Of a stretch of 64,000 bases of DNA, positions 13,608 through 56,300 are shown one piece after another. Origin of the DNA: Tubulanus polymorphus (taxonomy: Eukaryota; Animalia; Nemertea); NCBI RefSeq assembly GCF_964204645.1, contig NC_134034.1, positions 1,984,072-2,048,071 on the forward strand. The letters run 5' to 3'. A program made the translations under genes and the position numbers. Numbering within the stretch: the stretch's first letter is position 1; every line of letters begins with the position of its first letter. A model generated the notes under the pieces. It worked only from the letters and a program-made list of their open reading frames with translations, had not been told where the DNA came from and did no database searches.

Positions 13608-36395
<22,788 letters not shown>

Positions 36396-37808: not shown

Positions 37809-40800
37809 ATGGCGGATGCACGGAATGAAAATATTTTGACATCTAGTTTGAAAGTTTTGTTGATTTTGGTCGTGACAGCTTATCAAGTAAGTTGTAAACT
37901 GTTCTAAATGTTGCGTTTCATTAATTGAAGCCTTAAAGATTAGAATTAGGGTTTGCTTTTAAACATGTTTTAAGAGAAGTTTAATATTGGTCTAGTCAGT
38001 AACCTGTCTGTGGTAGTTTCACGATCGGATATTTTCACAAGCCCATCCGATAATAAAAAGCTTACCACCAACGATTAGGTAACTAACTCTGATTGGTCTA
38101 ACTGCAGTTTGGGTCACCTATCCACTGGGTGGCGCTAGTGTTAGGGGATGAATTAGATGCTAATTTTGTGTTTAGTTTTTTTCAGTTTAGAATAGGATCC
38201 CTCCTATTACCTGTACATAGATTTTCTAATCTCCATCTACCTAGAAACGAAAGAATGTGCCCAATCTGCAATGTTTTTGGGGATGAATTACATTTTCTCT
38301 TTGATTGTAAGATTCTTACCAAACTTCGCAATTCCATTCCGAATTTAGAAACATTTAGAAACTTTGATACATTAAAAACTCCAAATTTTCAATAAGCACA
38401 ATTTATAAAGGATGGTTTAGATGTATATAGATCCCTCCTGTAGTCTGTCAATTGTAAATAGTACACTGTATTTGTATATATTGTAAATACCCTTGTTATG
38501 TTTTTAAAATATTTTTTATTTTTCGATATGTAAATACTTGTAAACAAAATCATATTTTTTCCTCCATCTTATCTTATCTTATCTTTATAGTGTTATGGTA
38601 AGGTTAGGTACCTAACCACTAGGGACACCTAAACTGCAGTCGTTCCCAATGATTTATCATTTCGTCTTAATTTCCAGGTATCGGCCGCATCCAATGAACG
38701 ATCATTCACAATCGACTACGAGAAAGAGACGTTCGTTAAAGATGGCGTTCCTTTCCGTTATGTATCTGGAAGCCTCCACTACGCTCGCGTTCCGAGTTAT
38801 TACTGGCGGGATCGGTTAACCAAAATGTTCGCTGCCGGACTCGACGCGGTTCAAACGTAAGTCTGACCAGGCGATTATTTAGGTAGAGGGTCATCTGACG
38901 GGAGGAATCTGATATAGTGTTAACCCTTTCAGTTCTGATTGGATACCGAAATGTAGATGATTTGAAATTTCAGTGCGTATACACCGCAGTGCGGTGTACG
39001 AATCGGTGATGGATTTTGCTAGTACACCGCGCTGCGGTGTATTGGTATAATTAGTAATTAGTTTTAATCCCTATTGAAAGATGGCAGCAGCTGTCAAACC
39101 TAGTGAAATATTAGTAACTAACGATACACCGCGCCGCGGTGTAGACGCACTACAGTGCTATTCCCCTTATTCAACACACTAGGGTGGAATTTTTCAAAAT
39201 TTTCAAATTATCTCCAGCACTATAGGGTATCAATTAGTCAGCACTGAAAGGGTTAATGGGCATGCTTGCATCTTTTTAAATTCATTATTATTATTTTTAT
39301 GATTATGATTATTTTGTAGGTATGTACCGTGGAACTTCCATGAAACATTCCCGGGCGAGTATAACTTCCAAGGCGATCATGATTTGATCCAGTTCGTGCG
39401 AACGGCTCAGGACGTCGGTTTGCTGGTGATATTGCGCGCCGGTCCCTACATCTGTGGAGAATGGGAATTCGTGAGTATTCAGGAAGAGCTAATTTCAGGA
39501 TTTGTAGGATGAGTTCCAGGGGCAGACTTTTAACCCTTTCAGTGCGTCTACACCGCAGTGCGGTGAACGAATCAGTGATGGATTTTGCTAGTACACTGTT
39601 GTTGCTGTGTATTGATTTAATTAGTAATTACTAATTATCTCTCTTGAAAGATGGCAGCACCTGTCAAACATAGTGAAATAGTAGTTACTAACGATACACC
39701 GCGCCGCGGTGTAGACGCACTTTCGTGGTATTCCTGTTATTCAACACACTAAGGTGGAATTTTTCAGAATTTTCAAATTATCTTCAGCACTATAGGGTAT
39801 TAATTAGCCAGCACTGAAAGGGTTAATGGAATAAAGAAATATGAAATATGAATAGCAAGGACGTACAGTTAAAAAGCCTGCATGCAAAGCCAAAGCAGAA
39901 GTCTGGATAAGTTAGAAATTCCAGTGCATTGTCATACAATATCCAGGCACATGAGGGACATTATAGAGAATAAGCTGAATTTTGCGCTGTGTACTGCTGT
40001 TAATTGTGGGTTGATAAAGTGCCATCATATTTTCAAGAGGTACAGTAGAATTGCGACAGGAGCACGTGCTTCTTAGGCTGCTGTCTGGATCTGCCCCCAA
40101 TTTATGAACATTTTTTGAAACGATGACCGAAAATGAAAAATGAAAGTGTTAATGGTTCAGTAAAACACTCTGATAACGTAGTGAATTCTATCATAGGTTT
40201 TTACTCCCCTCAAAGTGAACATTTCATTGTCAAAATGTATTCTGAATTGTGAAGATATATTCACATGATTTCTGATTCTTAATTTTATGTTTTTTTCTAT
40301 TTCAGGGCGGCTTTCCCGGCTGGTTGTTGAAACATAATTCATCGATGGTTTTGCGAACAATGGACCCGGGTAAATCGAAATTGAAACCGAGTCCGAATTC
40401 GTCATTTCCTGGATGATCTTAGAAATACGTTTTTCCGAATTCTGTTTTCTAGGATATCTCGCGCCGGTCGGTCGTTGGCTGAGCGTACTATTGCCGAAAA
40501 TCCGTCCACATTTGTATTCGAACGGAGGACCGATCATTATGGTTCAGGTATAGTTTATTCGACTAAAACTCGCAAAAAAATCACATGTTGGGCCTGATTT
40601 CAAGGACTAAGTTTTCCCTAGGGATAGATCGCAAATCGGGGCCAGGGTTTATGGACTAGGTGTTGTGCCCCCTTGAAATAAATGCTTAACCTGGGCCTGG
40701 TTTTAGAAACTGGGTAGTAAAGTTATCCCTAGTGAAAAATCCTCAAGCTGGGCCCAGTTTCACAAAAAAGTTTAACTCAAATTGTTGGTGTAATTGCCAT

Positions 40801-43800
40801 TGGACACTTTATATTTTCAATGAGGAAAAGAATTCAAACTTAACTGATTTAAGCTTAAACTTTTTCGTGAAACTGGGCCCAGGACCTGGTTTTATAGACT
40901 GCCTGGGTATCAAGGTTATAGACTAAGTTATCTCTTGGGATAGATCCTCAATCTGGACCAGGTTTTATAGTCAAAGTTATTCCTAGGGATCAAAGTTATT
41001 CCTAGAGACAAATCTATAACTTATCAACAATCAGATGACAAACCATGGAAATAACTGAAAGATTCTGAAATATTTCAAGGGAAAACACTTTTATTTTTGC
41101 TGTAGCCCGAGAATGAATACGGAAGCTGGTACGCTTGCGATCACCGTTACATGCAATATCTCTACGACACGTTCTCGCTTTATCTGAAAAACGAGGTCGT
41201 TCTCATGACGACCGACGGCTGTATCGACCTTGACCTTAAATGCGGCGGCGTCAAGGGCAAGATGTACGCGACGATCGACTTCGGTCCAAGTAAGAGTTTG
41301 TGACGTGATTTGCTGCACTTCTGCACCAGGAAACTGGAAACTGAGCTATCTTTTTGACAATTGACCTAACATTATAACCGAGCTTTACAAATGACAAACG
41401 GCCGTTTCAAGGGCTATCTTGGGCTCGTGTCCTATTGGGTCGCTGGGCTTTTGGGGTTATTCTAAATGGTGCAGGGTTGGTACCATTTTACATATCTTCT
41501 GATTGTTCCACTTTTGGTAATCTACATGGTCCACAAAGGGAGATTTGACTTGAGCGGAGTCTACTGCACCATCCGACTCAAATATCTCTCTCAAGTCAAA
41601 AGATCTGACATGAGTGGAGTCTGTACCATCCAACTCAGATATCACTCTCAAATCAAAAGATCAGACTTGAGCGGAGTCTACTGTACCATCCAACTCAGAT
41701 ATCACTCTCAAAGTCAAAAGATCAGACTTGAGTGGAGTCTACTGTAACCATCCAACTCAGATATCACTCTCAAGTCAAAACATGTGGCTTGAGCGGAGTC
41801 TACTGTACCATCCAACTCAGATATCACTCTCAAAGTCAAAAGATCAGACTTGAGTGGAGTCTACTGTAACCATCCAACTCAGATATCACTCTCAAATCAA
41901 AAGATCTGGCTTGAGCGGAGTCTACTGTACCATCCAACTCAGATATCACTCTCAAGTCAAAAGATCAGACTTGAGCGGAGTCTACTGTATCATCCAACTC
42001 AGATATCACTCTCAAGTCAAAAGATCAGACATGAGTGGAGTCTGTACCATCCAACTCAGATATCACTGTCAAGTCAAAAGATCAGACTTGAGCGGAGTCT
42101 ACTGTACCATCCAACTCAGATATCACTGTCAAGTCAAAAGATCAGACTTGAGCGGAGTCTACTGTACCATCCAACTCAGATATCACTCTCAAATCAAAAG
42201 ATCCGACTTGAGCGGAGTCTACTGTACCATCCAACTCAGATATCACTCTCAAATCAAAAGATCTGGCTTGAGCGGAGTCTACTGTATCATCCAACTCAGA
42301 TATCACTCTCAAGTCAAAAGATCCGACTTGAGCGGAGTCTACTGTACCATCCAACTCAGATATCACTCTCAAGTCAAAAGATCCGACTTGAGCGGAGTCT
42401 ACTGTACCATCCAACTCAGATATCACTCTCAAATCAAAAGATCTGGCTTGAGCGGAGTCTACCTTACCATATAACTCGGATATCACTCTCAAGTCAAAAG
42501 ATCAGACTTGAGCGGAGTCTACTGTACCATCCAACTCAGATATCACTCTCAAAGTCAAAACATCTGACTTGAGCGGAGTCTGCTGTACCATCCAACTCAA
42601 ATATCACTCTCAAAGTCAAAAGATCAGACTTGAGCGGAGTCTACTGTATCATCCAACTCAGATATCACTCTCAGATCAAAAGATCTGACATGAGTGGAGT
42701 CTGTACCATCCAACTCAGATATCACTCTCAAATCAAAAGATCTGGCTTGAGCGGAGTCTACTGTACCATCCAACTCAGATATCACTCTCAAATCAAAAGA
42801 TCCGACTTGAGCGGAGTCTACTGTACCATCCAACTCAGATATCACTCTCAAAGTCAAAACATCTGACTTGAGCGGAGTCTGCTGTACCATCCAACTCAAA
42901 TATCACTCTCAAAGTCAAAAGATCAGACTTGAGCGGAGTCTACTGTATCATCCAACTCAGATATCACTCTCAGATCAAAAGATCTGACATGAGTGGAGTC
43001 TGTACCATCCAACTCAGATATCACTCTCAAATCAAAAGATCTGGCTTGAGCGGAGTCTACTGTACCATCCAACTCAGATATCACTCTCAAAGTCAAAACA
43101 TCTGACTTGAGCGGAGTCTACTGTACCATCCAACTCAAATATCACTCTCAAAGTCAAAAGATCAGACTTGAGCGGAGTCTACTGTAACCATCCAACTAAG
43201 ATATCACTCTCAGATCAAAAGATCTGACATGAGTGGAGTCTGTACCATCCAACTCAGATATCACTCTCAAAGTCAAATATCTGACTTGAGCGGAGTCTAC
43301 TGTAGTTAATTCCATGGTTTTCATTATTTATAAAAACTACTAAATAAGGACCCAACGGGTTGATTTCTACCATTATCAGGATTCAAATCGAATTCGACCG
43401 AAAAATTGGTTCAAAAGCAGAAATATTATTTTAGCCGGAAAATGAATACGGAAGTTGGTTTGCGTGCGACCACGAGTACATGCGATATCTGCACGATTCG
43501 TTCAAACTGTATCTCCATGACGACGTATTGTTGTACACGACGGACGGTTGCAGCGCGCGTGATATGAAATGCGGAGGTCTCGCCGGGCAGATGTACGCGA
43601 CTGTCGATTTTGGCCCGGGTCGTAAGTAACGCCTCGCCCAGGGTGGCGCCACTGTCCTGGAAAGCCTGCAAAATGCATTTAATATTAAGATGAATTTGGA
43701 AAAATCAGGGAAACCTTAGAAAATAAGTCAAATTTTACCGAAAACCGTTACTTTACCATTACGCGATTCATAAAAAATTAATTAATTTCAACCCTAGAAA

Positions 43801-46800
43801 TTTCTGCCATCGAATAAGAAAAATTTGATTCACTCGAGACCCTTCCATCCCTGCCCCTAAATAAGAGAAATTTGATTTCGTCTGGACACCCATACCCTCG
43901 TCCTGTTAGTGCACATAATATCCAGGGCCACGTTTTATAGACTGGTATTACCTTTAACCCATAGGCTAACTGAATTCATTATCAATTGAGTTAGCCCTAG
44001 TTAAAGATAATACCAGTCTCATCAGATTAGAAATTAACCAATTAACACTGCACCTTCAAACAAATTGATCCATCAAATATCAATTCATTTCATGTAAAAT
44101 GTATTTTATCTCTCTTTCTATGCGATGAAACAGCTCATAGCACAAAGAACTGTTTCGATATACAGATGAATTTCAATAGAGGACCTAAGGTAAATAAATC
44201 AACGTTACTGTTAGAAATTGAGGTTGTCGTAGGGGGATTTATGGAGGCAGCCATCTTTTCTAGTAGGGTTCATACATTAAATCAATAGTAGGTTGCTCAA
44301 TGATGTCATAGAGGGATTTATGGAGGCAGCCATCTTTTCTAGAAGGGTTCATACATTAAACCACTAGTAGGTTACTTGATGATGTCATATGGGGATTCAT
44401 GGAGGCAGCCATCTTTTCTAGAAGGGTTCATACATTAAATCACTAGTAGGTTACTTGATGATGTCATATGGGGATTTATGGAGGCAGCCATCTTTTCTAG
44501 AAGCGTTCATAGATTAGATCACTAGTAGGTAACTTGATGATGTCATAGGGTGATTTATGGAAGCAGTCATCTTTTCTAGAAGGGTCTATAGATCAAATCA
44601 CTTGTAGGTAATTTGATAATGTCATAGGGGGATTATTGAGATATCCACCATTTCTGCAATGTCTACGGTCTATAGATGAATTGATAAGTAGGCAATTTGA
44701 TGATGATGTTATAGAGTGATTCGTGGAGGCTGCCATCTTTTCCGCTACTGATGTTTGTTTTTTTGTGCGTGGTTATTTTCAGGTGAATTCCGAGTTTTAT
44801 ACCGGATGGTTGGATCTATGGGGTAAAGCTCATTCTCACACCGATAGTTCAGTTATTGCTAATTATCTCGATCAAATGCTCAAATACGCCAATAATACTA
44901 ACGTAAACATGTAAGTACATCCGAGCGATCGGTCAGGCAGGTTTTGATTCAAGTTTAGGGGCGAACTCTTTAATCGGATCGGAGAATCCATTTTCCTCAA
45001 ATTGTACTCTATTATTGGTCACGAGACTTTTTGGAGTCTCCAGAACCTCCTGACGAGGTGGTGTGATTCGGATTTTGTATGGAGCCAACCGGAGATTTCA
45101 GACGGAGACTTCGGAGGTCAGAGTACGCCCTAGGTCTTCAAGGATTAGCAATTCCAGATTACTAATATTCTACGGGTCGCTCTATCAAGTTTACAGAGTT
45201 TAATCATTATGCTATTCCTGATTAGTAAGCTGGGCATATTCTGATTGAAACAAACGCGATAGAAGAAAATTCCGGATGTGTTAGAGACCAATCAATAAGA
45301 ATGATGAATTCTGGAATTGGTACCGGTATTGGCCAATCAAAACCTGCTTTGATAAAACATAGATAACCTACCAGAATGAACTTCCGTAATGGTTCATCTT
45401 TCTGATTATAGGTACATGTTTGAAGGCGGTACTAATTTCGGTTATTGGAACGGAGCTGAAATGAGACCCTACGTTCCTCAGGTCACTAGTTACGACTACG
45501 ACAGTCCACTCTCAGAAGCCGGTGACCTCACAACGAAATACTTCGCCGTACAGAAAACTATATCTAAGGTATCAGGAATTAACGCAGTTGTGTGGGTTTA
45601 ATTGGACTCTGGATCCAGTTCCACAGTTGTGTGGGTTTAATTGGACTCTGGATCTAGTTCCACAGTTGTGTGGGTTTAATTGGACTCTGGATCCAGTTCC
45701 ACAGTTGTGTGGGTTTAATTGGACTCTGGATCCAGTTCCACAGTTATGTGGGTTTAATTGGACTCTGGATCCAGTTCTACAGTTGTGTGGGTTTAATTCG
45801 TCTCTGGATCCAGTTCCGCAGTTGTGTGGGTTTGATTTGTGTCTGGATCCAGTTCCATAGTTGTGTGGGTTTAATTTAACTCTGAATCCAGTTCCACAGT
45901 TGTGTGGGTTTAATTTGACTCTGAATCCAGTTCCACAGTTGTGTGGGTTTATTTGACTCTGAACCCAGTTCCACAGTTCTGTGGGTTAATTCAATTTGAC
46001 CTCGGATCCAGTTCCACAGTTGTGTGGGTTTAATTTGACTCTGGATCTAGTTCTACATTTTTGCGGGTTTGAATTCATTCGAGATCCAGATCTAATGAGC
46101 TGTTTTACTTTCTCGTATTTCAGTATAAAAGATTGCCGTCTGTTCCGATGCCTAAAAACACTACGAAATACGCGTACGGAAAAGTTCAACTGCGTCTGAA
46201 GTCGACCGTATTAAACATGCTTTCAACTTTATCTCCGAAACCTCCGGTCCTCTCCAAATATCCGTTAACCATGGAACAAATTGATCACGTAAGTTTTGAT
46301 ATAACATAACTAAACTTATATACAAATGTCTCCTTTGAAGCGAAAGAAATATTTTGAATTGAAAAATTCATACTAATTGTAAAATGCACCTGCACATGTA
46401 CTATGAACGTCTGCTTGTCTTACATGCACATGTAACATGTCCTCTGATCGTCTGACATGCACGTGTAACACGTTCTCTAATCAGATGTCAATCTCATGTA
46501 CATGTAAAATCTCTTCCGACTGTTTACCAGTCTTACATATGCATGTAACATGTCCTCTGCTAGGTATCTGTCGGTTTCACATGCACATGTTACATGTCCT
46601 CCCTATGGATCATCCAATGTCTTCTGAAACTGTTGCCTGTCACGCACGTGTAACATGTCGTCCGATCTCTACCTATTTTCTAGTATTACGGTTTCGTGGT
46701 TTATCGACACATTTTGAAGAAAAGTTACACGAAAGCAACATTGAATATTTCTGGTATCAGAGATCGTGGATACGTCCTCGTCAACAGTGTAAGTTACTGA

Positions 46801-48890
46801 TACATCTATAGATCTCTTGATGATGTCATAGGGGGATTTATGGAGGCAGACATCTTTTCTAGAAGTGTCTATAGATAAAATCACTAGGTTGTTTGATGAT
46901 GTCATTGGCTGACTTATGGAGGCAGACATCTTTTCTAAAATCGTCTTTAGATGATATCACTAGGTTGTTTGATGATGTCATAGGGAAATTTATAGAGGCA
47001 GACATCTTTTCTAGAAGTGTTTATAGATCAGATCACTAGTAGGTATAAATTTGATGATGACATTAGTGTTTGAGGCAGTTGCCATCTTTATAGGGATGAG
47101 TTATAGGGAAAATTAAATAGGTTAGATTATTAGACATTTACGTGGTAAATGATTAGATCTATGGAGGCAGCTTTGTTTTATTGATTTTGTCTTGTTACAG
47201 GTGTCTGCCGGGATGGTGGTGCGTGAACACAATCGCGTAATAACCGGCATTACCGTGAAGACCAACGACATCCTGGATATAATCGTCGAAAATCAAGGTC
47301 GAATTGGATTCGCGATCGAAATGCTCGGAGAAATTAAGGTTAGTCGGGTCTAAATTTTTCAAAAACTTTTAGATCAGGTTCCGGTTAAACAGTTCTCTGA
47401 TTAAAACGGCAGAAATGAGCTTATCTAATATCCTTTAGAGTTGAAATTATCTGTGTCTTGATTTGAAGGAAGTCATGAGTCGAGGTTCTTCTTTATGCCT
47501 TGATTCGTGTTTTTTTTTTCAGGGAATCATCTCGAATGTGACGATGAATAAAGATGTACTCACGGATTGGAAAATCTATCCGCTTACGATCGAAAACGCA
47601 GCCCACGACAAAAACCTGCGTTTCGAACCAAAACGGTAACAATTTCGAAGGCAGAATCTGTCAAACATAGTGAAATATTAGTAACTAACGATACACCGTG
47701 TCGCGGTGTAGACGCACTAAAGCGGTCAGCCAGTTATTCAACACACTAAGGTGGAATTTTTCAAAATTCTCAAATGATCTCCAGCACTATAGGGTATTAA
47801 CTAGTCAGCACTGGAAGGGGTAACTCGAACCATTTCTCCTATGAAACCATTGTCAGGTCTGAGTTGTAATGCAGTTCTAATGAATTTTAATCGTTTCAAT
47901 ATTTCCTGAGTAAAAAATATCATAATCTGACTTGAAAGATCCAGTAAACTGCATATTTCGAGATATAACATTTTTTTGAATATGTTTAGGTTTGATGAGA
48001 CAGTGAGGAACACAGTTAAGACGAGTATACTGCTGACACCTGCTTTGTTCGAAGGCACAATTCCAGCAGCTCGCGACGGCAAAAACTATGACACATTCTT
48101 AAAAATGGGTCCTTCTTGGATAAAGGTAATCAACATTAGTCATTCATCCAATAAATTTCATCATTATAATGTCTGGAGTTTGTAGTTCGTTTTCAATTAG
48201 AAATATCTCGGGTGAAGTTCTGAACACATGTGAAAGGTGGACGATCAGTTTTTGAAAGTGTGCTGATAAAATGTCTAATATCTGGTGTTTGTAGCTCATT
48301 TTCAATTAAAAATGTCTCAGATGAAGCACTGAACACATGTGAAGTGTGGACGATCAGTTTTTGAAAGTGTGCTGATAAAATGTCTAATGTCTGGTGTTTG
48401 TAGTTCATTTTCAATTAGAAATGTCTCAGGTGAAGCACTGGACACATGTGAAGTGTGGACGATCAGTTTTTGAAAGTGTGATGATAAACTGTCTAATATC
48501 TGGTGTTTATAGTTCTTTTTCAAATAAAAATATCTGAATTTTTTTCAGGGACAAGTTTTCATCAACGGGTTCAACGTCGGGCGTTACTGGCCGGCGAAAG
48601 GTCCACAGGTCACTCTATATGTTCCAGCTCACATCCTGAAACCGGCTCCCGCGAAAAACTCCGTTTTGATTCTGGAGTTGGAGAGCGCTCCGTGTTCGTC
48701 GTTTCGTCCGCAACCGGAGTGTTCGTTGGAGTTTATCGACTATCCGATCTTGTCGAAACCGAAAGGAACAGCGGCCGGCCGACCTCGACCACATCACAGA
48801 TATCAGCTTCCCGTTACGCGGCGCCGATCTGCGGAATCTTCCGAACCGTGGCGACTTCTCCAAAAATCTGTTCCTCGCAATAAACTCTAG
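37809..48890 (+). CDS. GLB1: Beta-galactosidase, glycoside hydrolase family 35 (GLB1-like), 696/697 aa
   Basis: Exons: 37809-37886, 38678-38856, 39320-39470, 40306-40369, 40453-40547, [41106-41289 or 43435-43621], 44134-44189, 44783-44910, 45412-45568, 46124-46288, 46684-46788, 47201-47338, 47523-47635, 47990-48125, 48549-48890. Features include a signal peptide, [42 protein letters not shown] (acid/base), NSEFYTGW (nucleophile), [19 protein letters not shown] and [14 protein letters not shown]. Confidence 0.95.
38180..38585 (+). mobile_element. 3' fragment of a non-LTR retrotransposon (C-terminal CCHC zinc knuckle) in GLB1 intron 1
   Basis: [13 protein letters not shown]...[20 protein letters not shown], followed by an AT-rich 3' UTR and an (atctt)n tail. 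Confidence 0.7.
38920..39256 (+). mobile_element. piggyBac-like MITE in GLB1 intron 2
   Basis: TTAA-CCCTTTCAG...CTGAAAGGG-TTAA ends with internal acaccgcagtgcggtgt palindromes. Confidence 0.85.
39530..39826 (+). mobile_element. piggyBac-like MITE in GLB1 intron 3
   Basis: Perfect termini TTAA-CCCTTTCAGTGC...GCACTGAAAGGG-TTAA. Confidence 0.85.
40749..40881. mobile_element. ~130-bp MITE (GGGCCCAGTTTCAC termini); second copy at 63390-63522
   Basis: Inverted termini and a shared internal sequence. Confidence 0.75.
41106..41289 (+). CDS. GLB1: GLB1 exon 6a (alternative catalytic acid/base exon, 184 nt)
   Basis: tgtag|CCC...CCA A|gtaaga; encodes [61 protein letters not shown]. Confidence 0.88.
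41540..43305. repeat. ~60-bp tandem satellite (~29 copies) between GLB1 exons 6a and 6b
   Basis: Unit agatcagacttgagcggagtctactgtaccatccaactcagatatcactctcaagtcaaa. Confidence 0.95.
43435..43621 (+). CDS. GLB1: GLB1 exon 6b (alternative catalytic acid/base exon, 187 nt)
   Basis: ttttag|CCG...GGT C|gtaagt; encodes [62 protein letters not shown]. Confidence 0.88.
44225..44745. repeat. ~78-bp satellite array in GLB1 intron 7
   Basis: About 6 tandem units. A further array lies at 46815-47065. Confidence 0.85.
45585..46065. repeat. 39-bp tandem repeat
   Basis: Unit cagttgtgtgggtttaattggactctggatccagttcca repeated about 12 times. Confidence 0.9.
48165..48530. repeat. ~109-bp tandem repeat (about 3 copies) in the last GLB1 intron
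   Basis: Repeated ttttcaattagaaat...gaacacatgtgaag...ggacgatcagtttttgaaagtgtgctgataaaatgtctaat. Confidence 0.8.
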
Positions 48891-50350: not shown

Positions 50351-53300
50351 TCAACGATTAACGCACTGTTTCAGTTTAGCGACGACATCCATGGAGGAGA
50401 AGGTGTACAAGACCGGGTTGACCGCCGAATTTATCGGTAAGATTATAATAGCGATCGTGGCCGACCACAAATTGGGTATAGCCACCCCTGTTATAGCGGC
50501 TATACTGAGACTTATGACAGGAGCCCAACAGGCCACGTGGACCAGAAATATGGGCATTAGTCTTCGGGCGGTTAGTAGTTCAGTATGACAACTGCGCCCG
50601 GATTCGATACGCGAGCGTCTGACCTGCAGATACAGCGCCGCGTAGGCGACAAGAATCAACAACAAACCGAAACCGTTCAAGCAGACGAACACGCCAAACG
50701 AGAATCCCCAGGTCTGGACGTTCTGCGCGCGCAACGTCAACGGCAAGCAGACGCCGTTCTGACCGTAGACGTTCGCGAGCCCGAGCGTCAACGGAATCGT
50801 GGCTACAAGGATAAACATCGCCCAAACCGCGCCCGAGATCGCCACCGATATTCGTCTGGAGCGGATTTGTTTTCCGGTCCAGATGGTCACGGCGCGTTCA
50901 ATGGCGATTATCAAAACGAAAGCGAGAGAACATTCGGAGGAGATCAAAACTAGGAACCCGCAGAACGTACAAAGACTGCTGTTCTCCCAGGTTTGCGCGT
51001 ACGCGTTAAAGACACCGAGATAGTAGTAGTCACTAGCGGCTATGATGAGTAAATAAGCGCCCATGATGGTGTCCGAGATGGCGAGGTTCACCGTGAAAAC
51101 GACCGTGGCCGTGAATTTGACATTTTTATCCGTAATACGCCAGCCGATGACGAAAGCGTTGCCGAATAGGGCAAAGAAGCCGGTGATCCACACCGCGATT
51201 CGGAGAATATCGGAGGCGATCAGCTCGTCGCATGAGGAGAATTCGTCCGGGGCTGGGGTGCAGGTCTTAACGCTCGGGGCCAGGCAACAAAGACGATAGG
51301 AATCAGTGAACAGGCTGTCGAGATTCGGAGTCCGACTGAAACTGGTCTGCGAGATCTCCGCGATTCCGTTCGAACGAAGGTCCAACCGACCAATCAGCGG
51401 CAAGTCGTCGAAAACGGCCGTTTGGACGGTTGAAATACCGTTACCGCTTAAATTCAAATTCAGCAACGCGTTCAAACCCCTGAAAACCCCGGTTTTAAGA
51501 GTTCTGATCGATAAGGCGCTCAGGTCCAAACGCGTCATACGCGCTAGCCCGACAAAAGTGCCCGGTTCGATGCTCGAAATTGGATTACCTCGTAAAAGAA
51601 GGTAGCGCAGATTTTTCAGACTGGCGAACACTCCGCGCGTTAACCTGGACAATGCGTTATTCCGCAGGTCCAACTCGTAAAGGTTGACCAACTTGTCCAG
51701 TACCGCGGGCGCAAGCTCGGTGATATTGTTAGCAGATAAATCAAGTCGGCCTAGTAACAGAAATCGGGTGAAGTCGAATCGTTCCGGCACGCTGATACCG
51801 CATCCACTCAACAACAGTGCTCTGATCGAGCCGGGTAGTTTAAACGGGATCGCGTCCGTCCCAATCGAGCCCACACCCGAACAATCCACGCCGTAACCAA
51901 TACACCGACAACCGTTCGGGCACTTTCCAACCATATCGCAGAACAACTCATCATCCCCGGTTACGGGGCAGTGGAATTTCCCGTCGCATAGATCCGCCGT
52001 CTGCGCGACCGTGGCTGAGCTGCGCCTGCACCGCAGACGACCGGCCGATTCGTAAACTTCATCGCAGTTTATTTCGTCGAAACCGCCGTCGCAGTCCCAA
52101 ACACCGTTACAGACTTTATACCCCGGTACGCAATACGACCGTGGGCACTTTAACGTCCCGACCGGGCAGACGAACTTCTCGCAGTTGTGCAAATGTTCCA
52201 TTCTGGTGCAGACGGTTTTGTTGAATTCGTCAAGTTCGTAAATGCACCTGTGTTTGAGCGAGTAACAATGGGCAGATGAGTCAGAGCAGCGATAACTACG
52301 ACCGGGATCTGCCTTACAGACGGCGTGCCCGGTTCCACCGCGTTCGGGCGTTTCATCTTGAACGGCCCCGGGGCAATCATCTACGTCATCGTTGACTAAC
52401 TCATTACTGATACACGCCCCGCTGTAGCACTGAAAACCCCGACATTCACTAGTACAGCTCACCTCGTCAGACCCGTCCAGACAATCTGGACGTCCGTCGC
52501 ACCATAGATGGCGCTGTAAGCATTGTCCGTTCGCGCAGACGGTTTGGTGATTTTTGCAGCTCGGGTAAACGCAGGCGGACTCGTCGCTGCCATCCGCGCA
52601 GTCGGAAACAAAGTCGCAATAAGAAGAAATCGATATACAATTTCCATCTTTACGACATTTGAAGTGATTTTGGCCGCAGGTGCAGTTGTGTTCGTCCTCG
52701 CCTGCCGCAGACCGACAATCATTCGTACCATCGCATACACGATGACCGTGCAGACATGAACCGTCATTACACCGGAACTGCCCTGACAAACAGGTCCGCG
52801 ATTCCGGGGCGTCGATACGACAAAGTACCCCACCCCAGTTATGAATGGCTGAGTCGTAGTCGCAAGCGCTAGACTGGACCCCGACTGTGTGGCGATCTAC
52901 TCGGTAACAATGGCCCGGTTTTGAACCGAAAACAACGCGTGATACAGCTGCGAATTGGACCGTACGCCGTATGAATTCGGCTACACTTTCGGCCGAAGTC
53001 GGCGTCGGAACTGTGACCAGGACGCCACCTCGCGGCCGACAGATGTCACCAGCGGCAAGTAGGTTCTGGCGATATTTCGCCGGGCGACAAACGCACGTGC
53101 AAATATTACCGAAGACCGCGCACGCGCGTGGGCACTTCGGAACTAATCGGATACGTTCGGGCCGTGTTCGTAAGGTCGATCGAAGCTCGCAGAAAAATAG
53201 GCTGCGGTATTTCAGTTGACAGGGAAATCGGGCCCAGTTAGCTTTCCCGTAAGGGCTGCTAAACAGCATGATCGTGCACAACATGTTCGGGTCTGGTAAT

Positions 53301-56300
53301 GGCTGCTTGCGGTTCAATGGTACGAACATCTGGATCGTATTGTGTATGGTAGAATCATTCTGGCTTCTGGAATACCATTCGGTGAAAGTCATCGGGCTGC
53401 CGTCTGACCAGTGATACCGTCGAGTCTGTGTAAAAAGTAGAATACAAAATACAAATGAGAAATAAACACTTTAAATCAATATAGCCGCAAAACAGCGATA
53501 ACGGGTTTTCTGCACAGCCGCGTTATGCTAACGAAAAATGAGAAGAGAAGAATGAATATAGCCGCAAAGCAGCGATAACGGGTTTTCAGCCTAGCAGCAT
53601 CATTAACGTGCAAATCTTTGGAAATTAGAAATAGAAAATATAGCCGCAAAGCAACGATAACGGGTTTTCTGCCTAGCAGCATCATTAATATGCAAATCTT
53701 TGGAAATTATGAAATAGAAAATATAGCCGCAAAGCAGCGATAACTGGTTTTCAGCCTAGCAGCATCATTGATATAAAACCTTTGGGACAACACTATCGGT
53801 TTGCTATATACTTTGATAAGAATGCCGACGAGCAATGACCAAATATTATATAAAGACATTAATTTTTGCCATTGACTATACACAACACTGACTATACACA
53901 ACACTCAGGCTATAATCCAAGCTTATTTCATTTTGAACTCTGTGTAGACATTTCAATTGTACAATTGCCCAGACTTCATTCTATATTGGCTAATATCATA
54001 TGGATGGTGCCAGACAGCAGATACCCGCATTTGTATTTATCCAAACCCCTTGAAAAAAGGCCCAGTATCAAAAACTCAAACTTACTGTAACATTGTAAAC
54101 CAGTCCGATATAAATGGCGACAGGAACACGACTATAGACCTCATTCAACCATCTAAATCTTATAATCCGTTTCAAACGCTCGGATTCCGTGTTCGAGTCG
54201 ATACCGATCAGGTGTCCTCCGTACCCCAGACAAACTTCTTCGGCCTCGAACCACGATATCGGTTCCTGTCGTCTTACGACCAGTCGTATACACGAATCGT
54301 CTCCGAAAGCTACGAATTCGCCTGTACATCCGTCGTTTTTAACCGTCGAATTCGACTGGTAAACTTCGGTCAGCGTCCGGTAGCGGATCCGCAGTTCGTC
54401 CGCGTATAAAACCGCCAGGAATGACACTTTCACGGATACGGACGTCGCCACGGCGTGTCTGACCGTCCCCGATCTCCAGCTACCGCAGAACCTATGCACG
54501 AACCGATCGTCGTTAGCGACGCCAGCGCCACCTAGTCCATCGGTCATTTCGACTTTAATTCGCTGATCGCATTCAACGTGGAAAAGTTCGAAAACCAATA
54601 GAAAGTGGTCGTGGGTATTTTTAGTCGAGGGGGTATTCCCGTGAAGTTGGTAAGTGATGCAGGTCGCTAGCAACCGGTCATTTCGACCAACGGGCCAGGC
54701 GTTGACGCTGACTATCAATCCGCAGCCTAAACCGTCTGATATTTTCGGAATCGCAGTTCCGATTGAACTTTTGCATTTCTGAAAGAACAATTCGCTTGCT
54801 TACAATATGATTTCCGTAGAATAGTGATTTTCTGAGGGATGTTCTTTTTCGTCGTCGGCTCCCAGATAGAAAATCATGATTTACTGCTTATAATTGATTC
54901 GATTTAATTTTTTGAAAATAATGAAGAAAAATAGATAACACATTCATCGTCTTGTCTTCCAAACTTACAAGGAAGACCCGCAATAGAGCAAAAGTAGTTT
55001 TTTTAGAAATTCATTTTCTTAGTCAAGAATTTTACTTTCAAATTTTCGATCATACGGAAAACGTTCTTATTCTAAAGGTTTTGAATTCATTGAGAAAATA
55101 ACGAAATTTTCCCTGGATCTAAAATGTCTACTGTCTGTTTAATTTACCTGAACTTTAGCGCACGGTGCAACGATTTTGACGAGCCAACCACCTCGCTGAA
55201 ACATACATCCGGCGGGCAGTTCGAAATACCAAATATGGGCACGAGCAACGGTTGATGACGTCGTCGTCGTCGTATTTACAAACGGACAGTAGAGGGCGTT
55301 GTAGTTTGTCTCGCAATCTACATACTGCGGAGTAAGATTCCTGCAGCCGATCATGGAACGGCTTCCGATGTCGTCCGTTATTCGATTCTGGTGCGTTTTC
55401 CTAATCGTTTCGATGTGGAAATCGTAGCGCCCGCGACCGCGCATGACAAGTTTCGTGTTCGGGTCGGCTCGTACCACGCGCCGGTCTTCTGGCAGACGAT
55501 CGAAATATTTCGGTTGTTGGATCACCAGGCAACCACGATGGGCTAGCGAATCGATATTTATGTCGTAACGGGAGGCCGGAAAAGACGGCAGAATCAGCCC
55601 GCGGCAAGTGGTTCTTTCCGCCTCCATCGCGAACATCACGTTCGGAAATCCATAACCGTAGAACAGGAAACTAAGCGTGTGATCCCCGGATGTGAAATCG
55701 AGCGCCGGCCAGCCAATCAGATCCGCGCTATGGCAGATCGGACCAATCAGACGCGAGCGCATCGTATCAACGCCATCTATGAGGTACATACCGGCCGCGT
55801 CACAAGGGGACACGTCGACGCGTTCGAAGTTTTTCGTGTACCTGAACGAATGCAAACGCAAAAACTCGCCTTCGTTCAACGGGACATAAAACCGGCAGAT
55901 TCCGACCGGGACCGCGAACGAGCAGTGGAACTGTACTGTGTTAGTGATTGTCACGTAAAACCTGTCTTGATATGCCGACCTACATCGGCAGTTGTCGTTG
56001 CCGCTCGAACGCGCTTCGGTTGTGAATTCTCCGGACAATATCTCCGACACAGCGCCACCTACGCTATCGTCTGCGGCCGTCAAGAATTCCCGTTTGGATA
56101 TTTTCAAAACGACCAACAATCGAAATCCAATTGTCGCGTAAGTTCCGCCATCGACCGAATCACCACCACCGTTTGATTCGTGACTCCGAAGCAGGTGCGT
56201 AGTAATATCGGTTTCGATTTCGTCAAAGAAGAAAGTAGCGCTGGATTTTTTCCCACCAATCGACGAGCGCCATTTAAATCTGATTACATAACGCGCATCA

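Follow-up and report, generated by a model that had tools for sequence, protein, structure and literature searches.

The sixth coding exon of a GLB1-type beta-galactosidase gene of the ribbon worm Tubulanus polymorphus is present in two tandem copies, 6a and 6b, both encoding the catalytic acid/base glutamate, and the reading frame stays open only when one of the two is included. Taken as a whole, the explanation held to be quite likely is that of an old tandem duplication leading to a true pair of mutually exclusive exons, the swap of which would shift the surface of the enzyme more than its catalysis. The use of both copies is predicted on the basis of the RefSeq models X1 and X2 and of selection. 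A word search with exon 6a in a 5.8-billion protein set gave no match among short public proteins, and T. polymorphus was not represented among the Logan-derived full-length proteins.

The GLB1 locus and its two copies of exon 6

The gene lies in the window, the 64,000-nucleotide stretch of T. polymorphus DNA that was analysed, where it is complete and extends over 37809..48890 on the plus strand, with 15 coding exons and GT-AG introns. Exons 1-4 (37809-37886, 38678-38856, 39320-39470 and 40306-40369) are followed by a constant exon 5 of 95 nt (40453-40547), which ends in phase 0 at position 40547, encodes a helix and a strand leading into the catalytic loop, and is found in one copy within the window. 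Exon 6a (41106-41289, 184 nt) and exon 6b (43435-43621, 187 nt) come next. The constant exon 7 (44134-44189, 56 nt) is entered in phase 1, and the constant exon 8 (44783-44910) encodes an NSEFY motif, the Glu of which aligns with the nucleophile of human GLB1. The coding sequence is completed by exons at 45412-45568, 46124-46288, 46684-46788 and 47201-47338, and then at 47523-47635, 47990-48125 and 48549-48890, all on the plus strand.

In order to compare this model with the annotated proteins, the GT-AG exons of the window were joined by a local script and the products were compared with the RefSeq entries; full-length searches were made with the database proteins. The 15-exon chain reproduces exactly both isoform X1 (XP_074659673.1, 697 aa), which carries 6b, and the "beta-galactosidase-like isoform X2" (XP_074659674.1, 696 aa), which carries 6a, with junctions at 40547, 41106/41289, 43435/43621 and 44134. 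The exon 6 segment is the sole difference between the two proteins, which fall within one 90% cluster, X2 having been found by profile search.

The protein matches the human GLB1 structures (3THC, 3WEZ) over residues 32-654 with an E value of 3e-205. The Glyco_hydro_35 profile PF01301 scores up to 71.5 bits on the exons of the window, its positions 147-206 being matched by each of 6a and 6b, and the precomputed domains of XP_074659674.1 are PF01301, PF21317 and PF21467. The ENEY motif, with the acid/base Glu in NEY, is present in both copies. An AlphaFold model of X1 (pTM 0.83) shows an alternation of strands and helices, followed by beta-rich domains. As judged from its sequence, the locus is a standard gene for a GLB1-type GH35 enzyme, with predicted activity. 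Another contig carries a second GH35 gene, a GLB1L-like paralogue that is divergent (about 40% identity) and has an ENEFG motif.

Two other genes of the window were noted on either side of the locus. Upstream, the first coding exon of a kinesin, encoding the N-terminus of the motor, is found on the minus strand at 36183-36395, head to head with GLB1. This arrangement suggests a conserved kinesin-GLB1 pair, because a minus-strand kinesin gene also lies directly upstream of GLB1 in the annelid Owenia (L016:1-457). Downstream, a single open frame of 1013 aa (50351-53392, minus strand) encodes a receptor with LDLa repeats, leucine-rich repeats and seven helices, similar to relaxin/glycoprotein-hormone receptors, in a region of raised G+C content (0.47-0.50).

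The two copies of exon 6 share 42 of 61 aligned residues (69%) and 69% of their nucleotides; a stretch of 20 residues and the motif MYAT.DFGP are common to both. Each copy is open, is bounded by an AG acceptor and a GT donor, and runs from phase 0 to phase 1. The 268-Mb genome contains no further copy of exon 6. The two are separated by an intron of 2145 nt, which consists mostly of a satellite (41541-43304, no strand assigned), made of about 29.5 copies of a partly palindromic 60-bp unit. Openness by itself is weak evidence for the coding nature of the copies, because about 9% of random 183-nt frames taken from the gene region are also open.

The lengths of 184 and 187 nt both leave a remainder of 1 after division by 3; therefore either joint use or joint skipping shifts the frame into an early stop. 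When the exons are joined in the order 5-6a-6b-7, a TGA is encountered three codons into 6b, and when exon 5 is joined directly to exon 7 a stop is read within exon 7. The orders 5-6a-7-8 and 5-6b-7-8 keep the frame open. These results bear out the first-pass annotation of this DNA: its coordinates, lengths, phases, splice sites, residue identity and motifs for the two copies were all reproduced, only one-of-two inclusion gives a full enzyme, as it had held, and the two products that it had proposed for a single gene correspond to the two RefSeq proteins.

Under the preferred explanation, exon 6 would have been duplicated in tandem, long ago, within a single GLB1-type gene, and each mRNA would include one copy. 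Transcripts with both copies, or with neither, would not be productive, and nonsense-mediated decay would probably remove them. The outcome would be two full-length enzymes of 696 and 697 aa, identical outside the exon-6 module.

The introns were also searched for long-range complementarity of the docking/selector type, and none was found. The search returned only local hairpins at 40748-40882 and 43939-44019, besides the palindromic satellite unit. Since no signal of competing structures was found, frame incompatibility is the simplest mechanism by which the choice could be enforced. The first of these hairpins, in intron 5, is an inverted repeat with 28-nt arms, 96% complementary and 79 nt apart, possibly the remnant of a small transposon.

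Predicted structural consequences of the swap

The swapped module consists of 61 or 62 residues, which correspond to the catalytic loop with the acid/base Glu, an outer helix, strand 5, a short helix or loop, and strand 6. In the AlphaFold model of X1 the catalytic loop spans residues 190-201, the helix 202-216, strand 5 residues 222-226, the short helix 230-236 and strand 6 residues 243-246. The 19 differences between 6a and 6b are found mostly in the helix and the turn that follows it, in the connection between strands 5 and 6, and at residue 218 (human numbering is used here and below).

Conservation was evaluated at two levels. Eighteen exon-6 residues are invariant in 40 metazoan GLB1 proteins, and all 18 are kept in 6a as well as in 6b; the set includes the NE of the acid/base motif, a Cys pair (human C195 and C230), TDG and D.F. 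Both products are probably active enzymes, because all these residues are retained. The variable positions were then compared by aligning the copies to human GLB1 and computing column frequencies over 368 members of the family. At position 198, where D, N or E occur in 82% of the sequences, 6b has E and 6a has R, a residue seen once. Position 201 is R in 6b and Q in 6a (67% and 2% of the sequences, respectively). At position 208, 6b has K and 6a has S, R being found in 78% of the family and S in 1%. Position 218 is Y in 6b and M in 6a; F or Y account for 98% of the column, and M rounds to 0%. On these frequencies 6b is the conservative, consensus-like copy and 6a the more derived one.

Part of this module has a known role in mammals. 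In the cryo-EM structure of the mouse lysosomal multienzyme complex, GLB1 contacts cathepsin A through two helices and a loop within residues 198-260, and the core salt bridges are R201-E34, D198-R48 and E259-K43 (PMC8115914). The mutations R201C/H abolish the complex and D198Y weakens it (PMC8115914). The differences between 6a and 6b cluster on the outer helix and on the strand 5-6 connection, that is, on the surface at which cathepsin A docks in mammals; for this reason the leading reading, suggested by the data, is that the swap would act chiefly on partner binding, on the formation of the complex or on stability, and less on the chemistry of catalysis.

Several observations weaken this surface reading. 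The best cathepsin-A-like N-terminal exon of the T. polymorphus genome (L022:1253-1402), the best PDB match of which is the human protective protein, encodes R at the position of E34, P at that of K43 and R at that of R48, so that two of the three partner residues known from mammals are replaced in this putative orthologue, one of at least 10 S10 loci of the genome. The gene for the cathepsin-A-like protein lies around G000:C3:27146013. In oysters, which also have two copies of exon 6 (see below), R201 is already absent from both. In the ribbon worm Lineus a comparable swap affects the preceding helix, outside the mapped cathepsin A interface. In the T. polymorphus genome, three of the serine carboxypeptidase (S10) copies were seen in tandem, about 6.3 kb apart (G000:C4:25823137-25837369).

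The principal alternative, proposed in the first-pass annotation as a tuning of substrate or pH preference, is that the isoforms differ mainly in catalysis, in their substrate range, pH optimum or kinetics, which is considered possible at a probability well short of even. In the form put forward, and with the same restrained confidence, the loop between strands 5 and 6 (IDLDL versus SARDM) and residue 218 (M versus Y) would reshape the rim of the active site. The acid/base Glu does sit in the swapped exon, the loop after TTDGC leaves, in the model, the catalytic face of strand 5, and residue 218 is M in 6a in spite of the almost complete prevalence of F/Y in the family. Weighing against a catalytic effect, the invariant exon-6 residues are all identical in 6a and 6b, and a helix shields the active site from the outer surface, the one facing cathepsin A in the mouse complex (PMC8115914).

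A more specific version of the surface reading, to which a rather low probability is assigned, describes the exon pair as a modular switch: one version of the enzyme would enter the lysosomal cathepsin A complex, and the other would be freed for another compartment or partner. The freed version could, by an equally speculative extension, take on a secreted or digestive role. The Tubulanus switch would then, with the same low probability, operate at positions 198, 201 and 208, where mutations known from human GM1-gangliosidosis disrupt the complex.

Selection, age and recurrence in relatives

Between 6a and 6b, dN is about 0.20-0.23 and dS is saturated, with omega values of 0.01-0.09 depending on the method. 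Mismatches are found at 23 of 122 first and second codon positions and at 33 of 61 third positions (Fisher p = 2.6e-6), the remaining 28 third positions being matched. This codon-position pattern is strong evidence for both copies being coding exons. The saturation of dS, together with a dN of about 0.2, indicates that purifying selection has long acted on both copies; neutral drift since so old a duplication could not leave a dN this low. The dN/dS comparison that the first-pass annotation had proposed as a check, with values near 1 as the adverse outcome, thus gave values far from 1.

A second alternative has to be weighed at this point, namely that one copy is used in practice and the other is a relic, its RefSeq isoform being a by-product of gene modelling. 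Such a relic could be 6a, which has evolved about twice as fast as 6b (tree branches of 0.47 and 0.23) and is off consensus at several conserved sites. A neutral copy, however, would show a dN close to the saturated dS, and the total dN is only about 0.2; moreover, neither copy has lost its open frame, its splice sites or any of the invariant residues. This alternative is regarded as improbable. A third one, an artefact of assembly or haplotypes or two overlapping genes, is given a practically negligible probability: repeats such as the satellite between the copies can mislead assemblers, but the copies are only 69% identical in DNA, the introns flanking them have nothing in common save the 60-bp satellite within the 6a-6b intron, which rules out an assembly or haplotype duplicate, and the other 14 exons are present as a single set around 6a and 6b.

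Relatives of the pair were sought by comparing a profile of 6a and 6b with 1.84 billion representative proteins. The best relatives found are at most 64% identical to either copy, and the two copies are therefore closer to each other (69%) than to any protein found. The distant ribbon worm Lineus longissimus has one exon 6, of 184 nt, and a single copy is also found in the scallop Mizuhopecten and in the abalone Haliotis. In Mizuhopecten yessoensis no intron separates exons 5 and 6, the sequences of which run on in a single open frame (L015:4630-4908). Since Lineus has a single exon 6, the 6a/6b pair is lineage-specific.

Two tandem copies were found in the oyster Magallana gigas (OY970754.1), at L017:5131-5320 (190 nt) and L017:6071-6254 (184 nt). 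RefSeq isoforms swap the corresponding versions, A and B, in five oyster species of three genera, Magallana gigas, M. angulata, Ostrea edulis, Saccostrea echinata and S. cucullata; the module thus tolerates swapping, and the pair is retained. One UniRef oyster model, A0A8W8MEV2, erroneously joins both exon-6 copies in a single protein that also has a fused AMPK-gamma-like tail.

The exon peptides were placed in a maximum-likelihood tree, the resolution of which is limited by its 59 columns. There, 6a and 6b group together in one clade (support 100/97), and oyster A and B in another (82/91). A shared origin of the Tubulanus and oyster pairs was considered and rejected: trees constrained to join a Tubulanus copy with oyster A were excluded by the AU test (p = 0.0015 and 0.003). 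The separate clades and this rejection lead to the conclusion that exon 6 was duplicated independently in the ribbon worm and in oysters. The first-pass annotation had suggested looking for the same pair in related genomes: a pair does occur in oysters, where it is of independent origin, and Lineus, the scallop and Haliotis each have one copy.

In Lineus longissimus (OU343007.1) it is exon 5 that is found in two tandem copies, both of 95 nt (L014:7491-7585 and L014:8367-8461). The peptides encoded by 5a and 5b are about 35% identical and are swapped between the RefSeq isoforms X1 and X2. Counting Tubulanus, oysters and Lineus, either/or designs have arisen three separate times, in three spiralian lineages, within two neighbouring exons of GLB1.

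A different arrangement was seen in the annelid Owenia fusiformis, where one full exon 6 is preceded by ten tandem partial copies of 87 bp, directly upstream (L016:15782-16655). Each unit includes the acceptor and the first ~59 nt of exon 6, with stops in some of them, and the last one continues into the real exon 6. These units may either represent a raw stage in the duplication of an exon or supply decoy splice sites.

Comparison with known systems

The either/or pair is already present in RefSeq for T. polymorphus and for oysters, and its mechanism is a textbook one. The suggestion, made on first inspection, that the design might be new does not hold for public annotation: both Tubulanus isoforms are annotated, and the oyster models XP_011445269 and XP_011445271 show the same swap. 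No article on either/or exons in GLB1, in GH35 enzymes or in oyster beta-galactosidase turned up in full-text literature searches, and the literature on GLB1 splicing that was found deals only with the human skipping isoform.

The closest parallel is provided by oyster GLB1. There, the orthologous exon is duplicated in tandem, after exons of 64 and 95 nt and before one of 56 nt, both copies have lengths that leave a remainder of 1 when divided by 3, and RefSeq isoforms swap them. The oyster pair differs from that of Tubulanus in its independent origin, and in that both of its copies have D198 and A201, with their differences located elsewhere. The 5a/5b pair of Lineus belongs to the same gene, again in a ribbon worm, and its tandem copies are likewise swapped between isoforms; unlike in Tubulanus, it involves the preceding exon, whose helix and strand lead up to the catalytic loop, and its copies are much more divergent.

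In humans the homologous exon 6 is also alternative: its skipping in the elastin-binding protein (EBP), mentioned in the first-pass annotation, agrees with PMC2631023. Nearly all of the cathepsin A interface lies in the part that is missing from human EBP (PMC8115914). EBP arises by skipping of exons 3, 4 and 6 with a change of frame, and is a catalytically inactive protein. In Tubulanus, in contrast, each predicted product retains one of the two homologous exons, and the catalytic residues are present in both products.

The modules exchanged by either/or exons are usually regulatory or binding ones. In T. polymorphus the exchanged module comprises the catalytic acid/base residue together with the surface that, in mammals, binds the protective protein, to which the human disease mutations R201C/H and D198Y map. 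Beyond the standard mechanism, interest attaches to the fact that such pairs recur independently in oysters and Lineus, and to the overlap with a docking surface linked to human disease. Because oysters evolved the same swap independently, the oyster and Tubulanus pairs are natural sets of matched GLB1 variants, which could show what role this surface has outside mammals, and whether the formation of the cathepsin A complex is ancient.

Exons 9/10 of PKM and exons IIIb/IIIc of FGFR2 are the classic frame-enforced mutually exclusive exons derived from tandem duplication. As in Tubulanus, the exons of each pair are homologous neighbours, one is used per mRNA, and a single structural module is swapped; for the Tubulanus pair no regulator and no docking or selector RNA structure was found, and it differs from both in that the swapped module includes a catalytic residue of a glycosidase.
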